From contig NIVC01004679.1 in assembly GCA_002269645.1 (NCBI GenBank), positions 1-38,324 of the forward strand: a DNA stretch of 38,324 nucleotides, given 5' to 3'. Position 1 is the stretch's first letter, and each line of letters starts with the position of its first letter. Both the position numbers and the translations under genes were made by a program. This stretch comes from Macrostomum lignano (taxonomy: Eukaryota). This document shows positions 24,940-27,900 of the stretch, in pieces. Below the pieces are notes generated by a model. It did no database searches. It saw only the letters and a list, made by a program, of their open reading frames with translations, and had not been told where the DNA came from.

Positions 24940-27900
24940 ATGCACCAACTGACCAGCGGCGTCGGCGCCCGGCGCTGCTCCAGCTTCCGCGGCGTCGGCA
25001 CGCACAGCGCCGCGGATTCCGGCCTCGGCGGAGACAACGGCACCGGTGTCGGCGGCGGTGGCGCTGGCGGCGGCTCGGCAGTTGACGGCTGCGACCCGAC
25101 CCGATTGGCGCCGAAGCGGTCGAGCTTCTCCGACGCCGCCTCGCTGTCGCCGTCGCGAAGGCGCCGATTCGCCACCCCGGCGCCGGGCGAGTCGGAGGTG
25201 TTCGACAAGCGCCTGGAGGACTCGCTGCGGGACCTCCGCGTCATGCAGGCCCGCCTGGCCCGGCAGCCGCCGCCCGGTGAGTCGGGGCACCTGCCTGCCA
25301 GCTTGTACTTTTAATTGCTGAGTAGCAGGGATGAGGAGGAGGAGTGGCAAACTAGAGGCCCGTGCTGTGCTGGAGATTCGCCCGCCACAGAGGGAAATAA
25401 TGAGGGGCAGCATCCATCGCCAGGGCCTACTCAGGGCGAGCAGTAATCTGCGCCCCGCATCAACAGTTGAGGCATCTGACAATGAGGAGCCGCAGTCTCC
25501 TTGCCAACAGCCTGGCAAACTAGCTAAGCTAATTGAGCCGGGCACCGCAAGCGGCCCCTGAGCAACACTCAAGAGAAGAAATTCCCACTAAAAATATGAA
25601 AGTTCGCTTTTTTTCAGTGGGTCTCGGCTGGATAAGCTGAGCTGCTTGAAACTGCCGCGGGGGGCACCGAGAAGCCCGGGGGACACGCCTGGCCGCTCCC
25701 CTTCAATTCCCTGCGCCGGAGGCCCCTCAGGGAGGAGGGCGGCTCACAAAGGCCGAAAATTGCTTGGGAGGAGGGCCGCCTGTTTACAGCTGGAATTCAG
25801 CCGGCTACCCGTGCTCTCCGGCACAGGCCGCCTGTTTACAGCTGGAATTCAGCCGGCTACCCGTGCTCTCCGGCACAGGCCGCCTGTTTACAGCAGGAAT
25901 TCAGCCGGCTACCCGTGCTCTCCGGCACAGGCCGCCTGTTTACAGCTGGAATTCAGCCGGCTACCCGTGCTCTCCGGCACAGGCCGCCTGTTTACAGCAG
26001 GAATTCAGCCGGCTACCCGTGCTCTCTGGCACAGGCCGCCTGTTTACAGCAGGAATTCAGCCGGCTACCCGTGCTCTCTGGCACAGGCCGCCTGTTTTAC
26101 AGTTTAGGTTGGCCTGACCTGCCCTGTTCCGTCCTGTCCACCATATGCTGATCTGTCCTGTTCTGTCCTGTCCACCGTGTGCTAATCTGCCCTGTTCCGT
26201 CCTGTCCACCGTGTGCTGACCTGCCCTGTTCTGTCCTGTCCACCATGTGCTGATCTGTCCTGTTTTGTCCTGTCCACCGTGCACTGATCTGTCCTGTCCA
26301 CCGTGTGCTGATCTTTCCTGTCCTGTCCTGTCCTGTCCACCGTGCACTGATCTGTCCTGTCCACCGTGTGCTGATCTGTCCTGTCCTTCCTGTCCTGTCT
26401 ACTGCGCACTGATCTGTCCTGTCCACCGTGTTACTGATCTGTCCTCTTCTGTCGCGTCTCTGTGTTGTCTTTCTCTTTCTGGGCATCAGCTCTGTCACGC
26501 CCCTGTCTCTGTGTATCTCCGTCCGGTCCTGCATTGATGAAGACGCAAAAGCCAGCAGTCCCCCCGACATCCTGCTGTTGTCCTGCTTGTCCTGCACATT
26601 TCCTACAGGGCGCAGGGTCCCAAAGGCCAGAGCTTGACAACTTCGACAGCGCAGTTAAAAGCGAGATTTGATGTCGCGAAGTTGGCGAGTTTCGCCTTTC
26701 CGGGTAGCAACTCCCTCGCCGCCTAATTAGAGGTCGAAATCGGCTGTTGAACCGGGCAGCCCCGGCCGGTCCTCTCAGCAGCGAGCGACGCAGAAATGAT
26801 GAAGGATTCTTGAGAGCGGCCGGGCCCAGGAGAACTTCCCAAATTAGCAACCCGAAGACCCCCAGCTCTCATAAGAGTTGATGAACTCGGCCGGGGGCCG
26901 GGGGGGGGGGGTCAAGCCGGCGCCGACAGCCCGCCGAGCCTAAAGGAAATGTCAAAAACGCAAAGGGAATTTTTTAATTTGTTGCTTCGGCTGCGGTGAG
27001 TCCAAGAGAAAGTCCAGCTGCCCGGGCCTTCCCTGCGCCTCTGCTGCCGAGGGTCTCCACCTGCCCAGCATTGTTTTACAACAGTTCTAATATTTTATGA
27101 GATGCTTTTTAAGAAGGCAAATTGGTGAATAAACAGCGCGTGTAATTTTATAATAGAGTGCGCTCTTGAGCACGCTTAAGTAGCATTTCGAATTCACACC
27201 TCAAGTGTTCAACCCTGCAGTGCCCCCCAGCTGACACCCTGAAGTGACCCAGCTGACATCCTGCAGTGCCCCATAGCTGACACCCTGCAGTGCCCCCAGC
27301 TGACACCCTGAAGTGACCCTATCTGACACTCTGAGTGATTCACCTCCTGTCAATCAATCAAGCTGCTGCCTCACCTTGGCAGGTGTAGTTGGCGAACAGG
27401 TACTTGTAGTTGCCAGGGCACGGGTCGCCGCCGAAGTTGTCGTTGCTGGCCACGAAGCTGCAGCTCTGCCGAGCGTCGCACTGCGCCCGCACGAAGCTCA
27501 GGGAGTTCGGGCTCCAGCAGTTGTTCAGGCTGCTGGTTGTCCTGGTGCAGGCCGTGCTGAACTCGTCCGACTTGCCGAACATGGCGAACTCCGTCTGGAT
27601 GGCGCCCGCCGGGCAGCTCAGCTCAGCCGCTGACTTCTCGCACACCAGCAGTGACTGCACAGCGGCCTCTGCGGGGCGAGTTCCGGCATCTCTGCTGACA
27701 TTTCTACTGACATGTCTACTGACATTTCTTCTGACATGTCTACTGACACTTCTACTGACATTTCTTCTGACATGTCTACTGAAATTTCTACCGGCATTTC
27801 TACTGATATTTCTACTGACATTTCTACTGACATCTCTATCTGATACTCTGAAGTGACCCCAGCTGACACCCTAAAGTGACTCCAGCTGACACCCAAAGTG

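Follow-up and report, generated by a model that had tools for sequence, protein, structure and literature searches.

An inverted copy of a SUEL-lectin exon within a split minisatellite of Macrostomum lignano: a probable case of templated insertion during break repair

Repair-mediated duplications and the Macrostomum lignano locus

Pace, Sen, Batzer and Feschotte (2009) catalogued more than 800 repair-mediated duplications in the human genome, with 824 proximal ones (PMC2671141). The donor of such a duplication lies less than 5 kb away, the copy is at most 619 bp long, and the microhomologies at its junctions measure 2-9 nt; target site duplications of 4-21 nt were seen in six of the 39 cases inspected, and a poly(A) in no proximal case inspected (PMC2671141). 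Two were cassettes of intron, full exon and intron, one of which, that of ACSBG2 exon 7, is inserted inverted in an intron and keeps an intact open reading frame (ORF), with no sign of constraint (PMC2671141). We describe here a comparable arrangement in Macrostomum lignano, found in contig NIVC01004679.1 of assembly GCA_002269645.1 (38,324 nt of the forward strand; this whole stretch, called the window, is the scope of the searches reported below). Two inverted copies of a block that holds a complete SUEL-lectin exon lie at about 23 kb and 27 kb. The 27-kb copy is best read as inserted into an array of 23-mers, with the 23-kb copy as its donor, and we hold with moderate confidence that it is a DNA-templated insertion from this nearby donor, made when a break in the array was repaired.

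The locus resembles the human class in several ways: the donor lies 3.5 kb away on the same chromosome, the insert measures 501 bp and is a whole intron/exon/intron cassette, its junctions have 2 and 3 nt of microhomology, and it lacks a poly(A). The insert, which is longer than 50 bp, interrupts a recognisable repeat, giving the event its polarity, and a 16-nt target duplication may be added as an optional feature. Within the window the block has one other copy, with 3506 nt between the two arms. The locus differs from the published cases in that the acceptor is a minisatellite array rather than a transposable element, that the donor brings its own minisatellite, whose CTGACA core matches the acceptor at the junction, and that the host is a non-vertebrate metazoan, whereas the published cases were catalogued in vertebrates. 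The kind of event is already known, and the differences from the published class are modest (PMC2671141).

An inverted, templated copy of a nearby sequence with short microhomologies, and a break or stall within a structure-prone repeat, are also features of fork stalling and template switching (FoSTeS) and break-induced replication mediated by microhomology (MMBIR; Hastings et al. 2009, PMC2621351) and of fold-back insertions (PMC11724301). MMBIR typically yields larger and complex products with several switches (PMC2621351), unlike the single donor and two clean junctions found here, and the yeast fold-back insertions are mostly of 5-34 bp (PMC11724301), as against ~500 bp in M. lignano.

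The two copies, the interrupted array and the junctions

The arms of the inverted repeat (23315-23823 and 27330-27838) are 509 nt long and 94% complementary, and a gapped alignment of the two gave 494 identical columns out of 526. Identity is very uneven along the block. The unique core (27333-27686 against 23820-23467) shows two mismatches in 354 nt (99.4% identity), at 27611 and 27648, while the 12-mer satellite tail (27687-27838 against 23466-23303) shows about 16 mismatches (~11%) and an indel of one 12-nt unit; the maps of unit variants in the 27-kb copy and the 23-kb donor array differ. An earlier reading of the sequence alone, made without database searches (the sequence-only reading), had described the 27-kb block as an inverted near-identical copy. 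The inversion is real; near-identity holds for the unique core and fails for the 12-mer tail.

Self-BLAST of the window confined the homology to 23309-23823 and 27845-27330, breaking off sharply at both ends of the block, and no third copy of the block was found in the 38 kb. By eye, the sequences flanking the donor block had looked like decayed 23-mer units, which would have pointed to an older and larger duplication; their local alignment to the array was no better than that of random windows (p~0.35 on each side), and this candidate was rejected. Since self-BLAST is empty beyond the block and the donor flanks align like random sequence, we regard as ruled out that the block borders a larger segmental duplication, a possibility that the sequence-only reading had itself raised against its proposal.

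Both copies encode the same domain. Pfam SUEL_Lectin (PF02140) covers residues 16-96 of the 97 encoded by the exon, with 66.8 bits (E=2e-18) in the source and 69.2 bits (E=4e-19) in the copy against a gathering cut-off of 31.4. The conserved cysteine pattern and the GDPC.G.YKYL motif of SUEL, or rhamnose-binding, lectins are present, and the closest solved structure to the SUEL peptide is the L-rhamnose-binding lectin 5h4s (E=2.5e-40). The window holds no SUEL sequence besides these two; a protein-database search with the SUEL exon gave no candidate and a metagenome scan with the SUEL peptide found nothing. As first claimed, the 27-kb copy contains the whole 294-nt phase 1-1 exon with both splice sites and intron flanks. 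The two differences in the core both alter the protein, with V in the donor against L in the copy at 27648 and L in the donor against P in the copy at 27611; with two differences only, the ratio of nonsynonymous to synonymous change (Ka/Ks) is uninformative for this pair. At the second of these (27611, corresponding to 23542) the inserted copy has the Pro of the CP.G motif typical for SUEL and the presumed donor has Leu, and the donor may be the copy that was altered after the event. The 12-mer array leaves the SUEL frame open in both copies (23295-23792 on the plus strand and 27361-27870 on the minus strand), giving ORFs of 166 and 170 aa that span both 12-mer and SUEL sequence and read ...VSRNISRHVSRN..., so that the exon could in principle exceed the 294 nt set by its AG acceptor.

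The insert is flanked by tandem arrays whose limits were placed at 27212-27337 and 27840-28049 by Tandem Repeats Finder (TRF). The two belong to one 23-mer family (normalised score 0.75, with a background of at most 0.3), which occurs nowhere else in the window, and because a single family borders the block on both sides we read the 27-kb copy as an insertion into a pre-existing array, in agreement with the earlier claim that a 23-bp minisatellite had been split. Same-family pairs number just two across the window's 27 array families, namely this split 23-mer pair and the 12-mer pair of the two copies, and the 23-mer array is the sole interrupted one. An alpha-actinin exon lying between the arrays at 1-126 and 475-691 was checked as a possible second example; the families differ (normalised score 0.30), and since those arrays proved unrelated the split 23-mer array can be taken as a genuine insertion signal. 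As single-stranded DNA the right part of the 23-mer array folds better than shuffled sequences (z = -2.8 and -3.85), and the acceptor appears as a quasi-palindromic, hairpin-prone tandem array. The wider suggestion that minisatellites serve as landing sites was overstated, being drawn from a single case. As a separate observation, the 23-mer unit, CTGAC...CCCCAG, resembles a branch point followed by a pyrimidine tract and a CAG acceptor.

The two 16-mers that border the insert (Table 1) are identical at 15 of 16 positions. The variant CTATCTGA has two sites only on both strands of the window, one in each 16-mer, and its confinement to the junctions, claimed at the outset, is therefore upheld. 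On the left, the array ends ...CTATCTGACACTCTGA and the insert begins GTGATTCACC, where the donor reads ...GTCCGA GTGATTCACC; continuation of the array past this junction would give AGTGACC, and with a slip of 1 nt GA(A)GTGA is common to the donor. On the right, the last 12-mer unit, CTGACATCTCTA, is followed by T CTGATACTCTGAAGTGACCCCAG, and CTGACA stands directly after CTA in both the 12-mer and the 23-mer families. No filler DNA was present at the junctions.

The sequence-only reading treated the 16-mers as resembling a target site duplication. Two such 16-mers do exist; their origin by duplication is ambiguous. Twelve of the 16 bases (CTGAYACTCTGA) are the ordinary in-phase first half of a unit, a variant that recurs at 27977, and to that extent the 16-mer is a common unit variant, CTATCTGA being the part restricted to the junctions. 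Adjacent units of the 23-mer array often carry the same variants, and a 7-bp deletion (AGTGACC) between two adjacent units with the CTAT and CTCTGA variants fits equally well as a 16-bp duplication. Because the array is periodic and 12 of the 16 bases are a normal unit variant, in-phase flanks would arise by either route. The deletion model accounts for the C/T mismatch between the 16-mers without a later mutation, and among the catalogued human cases junctions of this type show small deletions more often than target duplications (PMC2671141). A 16-bp target site duplication is thus one of two equally good readings and is not secure. Under duplication, the empty site at 27 kb is predicted to read ...AGTGACCCTATCTGA[C/T]ACTCTGAAGTGACCCCAG..., with one 16-mer; under deletion, it would have two adjoining CTAT/CTCTGA units with AGTGACC between them. 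Metagenome contigs scanned for the 23-mer predicted at such an empty site gave no match.

Table 1. Coordinates of the two copies, their junction sequences and the lectin-type exons of the window
Feature	Position	Strand	Remarks
Inserted block	27335..27835	-	501 bp, reverse complement of ~23818-23303; plus-strand order: 40 nt 3' intron, exon, 18 nt 5' intron, 12-mer array
SUEL-lectin exon, copy	27375..27668	-	294 nt, phase 1-1, AG/GT kept, reading frame open
12-mer minisatellite CTGACATTTCTA	27687..27838	+	12 units, carried along with the exon
Other copy (presumed donor)	23303..23820	+	12-mer array (23297-23466), 18-nt intron flank, exon, 42-nt 3' intron flank (23779-23820) ending in GA shared with the acceptor
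SUEL-lectin exon, presumed donor	23485..23778	+	294 nt, CAG/AGGCC acceptor, CAAG/GTGAGG donor, phase 1-1
Left 16-mer CTATCTGACACTCTGA	27319..27334	+	last bases GA (27333-27334) also in the donor, 2-nt microhomology
Right 16-mer CTATCTGATACTCTGA	27836..27851	+	first bases CTA (27836-27838) also end the last 12-mer unit, 3-nt microhomology
23-mer minisatellite, left part, consensus CTGACACCCTGAAGTGACCCCAG	27212..27334	+	~5.5 units (TRF, unit parsing)
23-mer minisatellite, right part	27840..28049	+	~9 units (TRF, unit parsing)
8-bp direct repeat GTTTGTCA, left member	23294..23301	+	directly adjoins the 12-mer array at its end, carrying on its phase
8-bp direct repeat GTTTGTCA, right member	23827..23834	+	starts 6 nt past the last base common to the 27-kb copy
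Terminal FTP / F5_F8 type C exon, intact	14306-13909	-	phase-1 acceptor
FTP decayed pseudo-exon	15091-15387	+	inverted head-to-head partner of the intact exon; TAA for TAC, 37-bp deletion
FTP-like fragment	17906-18018	-	76% identical to 14185-14297; frame stops after ...SLMSW
ATG-bearing Cys-rich exon, earlier called PAN	18798-18507	-	ends in phase 1, GTGAGC donor

Origin of the inserted copy

Templated repair synthesis from a neighbour 3.5 kb away, one of two routes named in the sequence-only reading, is the best explanation of the 27-kb copy, because the insert is ~500 bp long, the donor is close and in inverted orientation, the junctions have microhomologies of 2 and 3 nt, marks of mobile elements are absent and the acceptor is foldable. 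From the polarity of the insertion, the limits of the block, the sequences and microhomologies of its junctions and the absence of transposon or retroposition marks, all of which are observed, we infer a break, a fold-back geometry and a polymerase pathway, which may have been synthesis-dependent strand annealing (SDSA), MMBIR/FoSTeS or another. A break or a collapsed replication fork would have arisen in the hairpin-prone 23-mer minisatellite at ~27334. After resection over several kb, the 3' end would pair by microhomology (GA, or GA(A)GTGA with a slip) 3.5 kb away on the same chromosome; in the simplest geometry the 3' tail, ...CTCTGA, would snap back on its own resected strand and anneal to the TC at 23819-23820, and such a fold-back would give the inverted orientation. 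Repair synthesis would then proceed leftwards for ~500 nt, through 40 nt of intron, the SUEL exon and 18 nt of intron into the intronic 12-mer array, where the nascent strand would be released and anneal to the other broken end at CTA/CTGACA (the 12-mer reads ..TCTA CTGACA.. and the target ..CCTAT CTGACA.., with CTA and the CTGACA core in common). Fill-in would leave either the 16-bp target duplication or the 7-bp deletion between two adjacent variant units. The product would be a splice-competent phase 1-1 domain exon at a new place, and judged by its sequence it is best seen, for now, as a silent extra copy. The donor has other lectin-domain exons (FTP and PAN-like) as neighbours, as would be expected of a resident exon.

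Three observations weigh against this reading. The presumed donor has a perfect 8-bp direct repeat at its ends, which simple copying from parent to child does not predict. The 12-mer arrays diverge ~20-fold more than the unique core, so that an additional assumption, either turnover of the array or sloppy copying, is needed. Finally, it is the copy and not the donor that holds the canonical Pro of CP.G, reflected in its higher Pfam score (69.2 against 66.8 bits), and the donor must therefore have been altered since the event or is not the direct parent. As to the second of these, repair synthesis is mutagenic and inclined to template switching at microhomology (PMC12891019), and mutagenic repair together with ordinary minisatellite turnover can explain a reshuffled 12-mer array beside a near-identical core.

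The 8-bp repeat implies that the source may itself be an insertion, with both copies possibly derived from a third. GTTTGTCA has only two plus-strand occurrences in the window, a pairing that would arise by chance with a probability of ~0.004-0.015 and that was noticed post hoc; if the source was also inserted, the empty site at 23 kb is predicted to read ...CACTACTAGTTTGTCATCCGGTAAG.... Both copies would then be independent insertions of one discrete cassette from an unseen master copy, with the 12-mer array pairing, as a tail for integration, with targets of the TGACA type. They might have arisen by target-primed reverse transcription of an antisense transcript, which would leave 8- and 16-bp target duplications and slightly differing 5' ends, or by serial repair-mediated copying. 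Besides the perfect repeat bordering the 23-kb block and the consensus Pro being in the copy and not in its supposed source, such an origin would suit the downstream repeat, which carries on the 12-mer phase at both loci (TGACA at 23 kb and CTA at 27.8 kb), the ends of the blocks, which at the unique end differ by ~6-8 nt at most and at the other fall inside the array, and the 12-mer arrays, neither of which resembles a parent of the other. Yet two landings 3.5 kb apart, both beside lectin exons, would be improbable unless the copy number were very high, and 38 kb held no further copy; the block has no poly(A), polyadenylation signal, T-rich nick site, tRNA or Rfam head or terminal inverted repeat (TIR), and a repeat found post hoc has a chance probability of ~1%. 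We consider a common third master unlikely, though of the alternatives it survives best.

Gene conversion is known to act on inverted repeats separated by a few kb, and the arms described here, 3.5 kb apart, are of this type. The insertion could be of the same kind and old, and thus not caught in the act, with the 99.4% identity of the core owed to recent conversion between the arms. This would fit a satellite that is ~11% diverged with an indel and 16-mers that differ at one position in 16, next to 354 nt with only two mismatches. At the left junction, however, identity is perfect to the last homologous base (42 nt of intron with no mismatch), so that conversion would need to have spanned all of the unique sequence; the FTP exons, which form the window's other inverted pair (arms 842 nt apart), are down to 90% identity and have not been homogenised, and minisatellites in any case evolve faster than unique DNA. 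We regard recent conversion as improbable.

It is a little less probable still that the block is a repeatedly mobilised exon cassette, both copies being target-duplicated (8 and 16 bp) and the 12-mer tail pairing with CTGACA-type cores, which would recur in the abundant intronic minisatellites of this genome. If this were true, minisatellites that share a core would be adapters that move splice-ready exons between introns, a dedicated route of exon shuffling in a minisatellite-rich genome.

The other route named in the sequence-only reading, reverse transcription of pre-mRNA, found no positive support. A double-strand break might have been patched with cDNA from a fragment of unspliced pre-mRNA, as in class 2 templated sequence insertions, which have microhomology and no poly(A) and an experimental link to reverse transcription (PMC5110952); the block, an exon with intron, is transcribable sequence. 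Nothing, however, would direct a patch derived from RNA to a site 3.5 kb away from its template. Class 2 insertions are by definition without target duplications and come from distant donors (PMC5110952), and the human duplications inspected with donors less than 5 kb away lack marks of retroposition and fit DNA-templated SDSA (PMC2671141). We think a cDNA patch very unlikely. Equally slight is the probability of an assembly artefact, in which a mis-joined or chimeric read set a second, inverted exon copy inside the array: tandem repeats make up 32% of the window and are hard to assemble, but the copies differ at two unique positions and have distinct satellite unit maps, both junctions are clean, array-phased and bear microhomology, and the copies stand 3.5 kb apart, unlike a hairpin-like fold-back of adjoining sequence.

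No TIR was found at the ends of the block (best terminal match, 5 nt), no A or T runs of at least 5 and no AATAAA in 27300-27870, no tRNA gene in the window with ARAGORN and no Rfam match at gathering score, and the earlier statement that TIR and poly(A) are lacking holds for the block. It ends GTGATT...GACATCT, and the repeats would measure 16 at the 27-kb copy and 8 at the 23-kb copy. A DNA transposon and Pack-MULE or Helitron capture were rejected for want of TIRs, of 5'-TC...CTRR-3' ends and of a target duplication of fixed length, and a tRNA-derived short interspersed element for want of a tRNA-like or other RNA polymerase III head. Class 1 insertions mediated by long interspersed elements (LINEs), and processed retrocopies, likewise have a flanking repeat of more than 5 bp and of variable length (here 16 and possibly 8 bp; PMC5110952), and the 16-mer is longer than the minimum of 5 bp for a LINE target duplication, but array phase accounts for 12 of its 16 nt. 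In contrast to that class, the locus has no poly(A), polyadenylation signal or TTTT/A target, its introns are kept and its donor is adjacent (PMC5110952). LINE-mediated retroposition was rejected on these grounds, there being no T-rich nick site and the target being CCCTAT/CTGACA. The insertion was an event of DNA and the intron flanks came along with the exon, which excludes a processed mRNA, as had been proposed from the start.

Neighbouring exons and the prospect of exon shuffling

The copies lie in a cluster of lectin-type exons between two larger genes. An alpha-actinin gene occupies ~0.1-9.5 kb of the minus strand, its exons matching those of diverse metazoans in the protein database at 71-80%, and a C2A-C2B gene, of which the C2A and C2B exons were verifiable, lies at 34.2-35.9 kb on the plus strand. 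The sequence-only reading had set the 27-kb copy antisense within the putative first intron of this C2 gene, a placement that goes beyond those two exons. Two similar exons for the CH2 domain of alpha-actinin (5231-5488 and 6538-6855, minus strand) look like a mutually exclusive alternative pair.

Within the cluster, the intact FTP exon and its decayed inverted partner are 90% identical over 287 aligned nt (13921-14248 on the minus and 15091-15387 on the plus strand), with arms 842 nt apart. From this older pair it follows that inverted local duplication of lectin exons has occurred at least twice in the window. The FTP-like fragment at 17906-18018 is probably another exon relic. The ATG-bearing Cys-rich exon had been labelled PAN, a label without Pfam support, as this exon gave no Pfam match even at E<=1. 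A protein-database search with the PAN-like and FTP exons as query returned only FTP domains at no more than 45% identity; PAN_4 or WSC domains do occur in distant FTP relatives from the database. A 90-nt inverted repeat elsewhere in the window (16241-16331 and 16928-17015; 89% identical, arms ~600 nt apart) may be a small foldback or TIR element.

Minisatellites of the 27 families make up ~32% of the window, among them those at 23297-23466, 14322-14555, 1-126 and 475-691, and 33129-34193. The arrays come very close to the exons: 18 nt separate the 12-mer from the SUEL acceptor and 15 nt a 39-mer from the FTP acceptor, and the actinin exon mentioned above sits between two unrelated arrays. CTGAC or GTCAG occurs in the consensus units of five of the 27 families, where ~1.2 would be expected (p=0.005, post hoc); these are the arrays at 2563-2850, 13329-13421, 14322-14555, 23297-23466 with 27687-27843, and 27212-28049. 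A common CTGAC core was rejected as a signal, being too weak and post hoc, and other 5-mers are more widely shared, such as CCCAG by eight families.

The sequence-only reading had presented the locus as exon shuffling caught in the act, with the copy upstream of the PAN-like and FTP exons and in sense with them. The placement was borne out: the 27-kb SUEL copy has the orientation of the FTP gene, lies 8.6 kb upstream of the ATG exon and is phase-compatible, being in frame with the FTP exon. The 23-kb copy runs antisense to the FTP gene. The larger claim went too far. The copy is upstream of an exon that bears the ATG, and when it was joined to a candidate acceptor in front of that exon (gtgcag/ATTAAC), the one tested, the frame met a stop codon. 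As in classical phase 1-1 exon shuffling, the exon is one SUEL domain with symmetrical phase 1 and kept splice sites, and its frame fits the FTP exon; unlike the classical cases, it stands upstream of an ATG-bearing exon. Its part in exon shuffling would be potential only.

The locus offers a clean, young example of how ordinary break repair can relocate a complete domain exon without a transposon. An exon with its splice sites and symmetrical phase is raw material for models of exon shuffling, and what usually becomes of such copies can be seen in the FTP pseudo-exon pair, which is older and decayed. Recombination between the near-identical inverted arms of 354 bp could flip the GC-rich spacer of 3.5 kb, and transcription of both arms together could give a long RNA hairpin. 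If this is one of many such events, with tandem arrays as the preferred acceptors, the fragility of minisatellites would be linked to the evolution of domain architecture.

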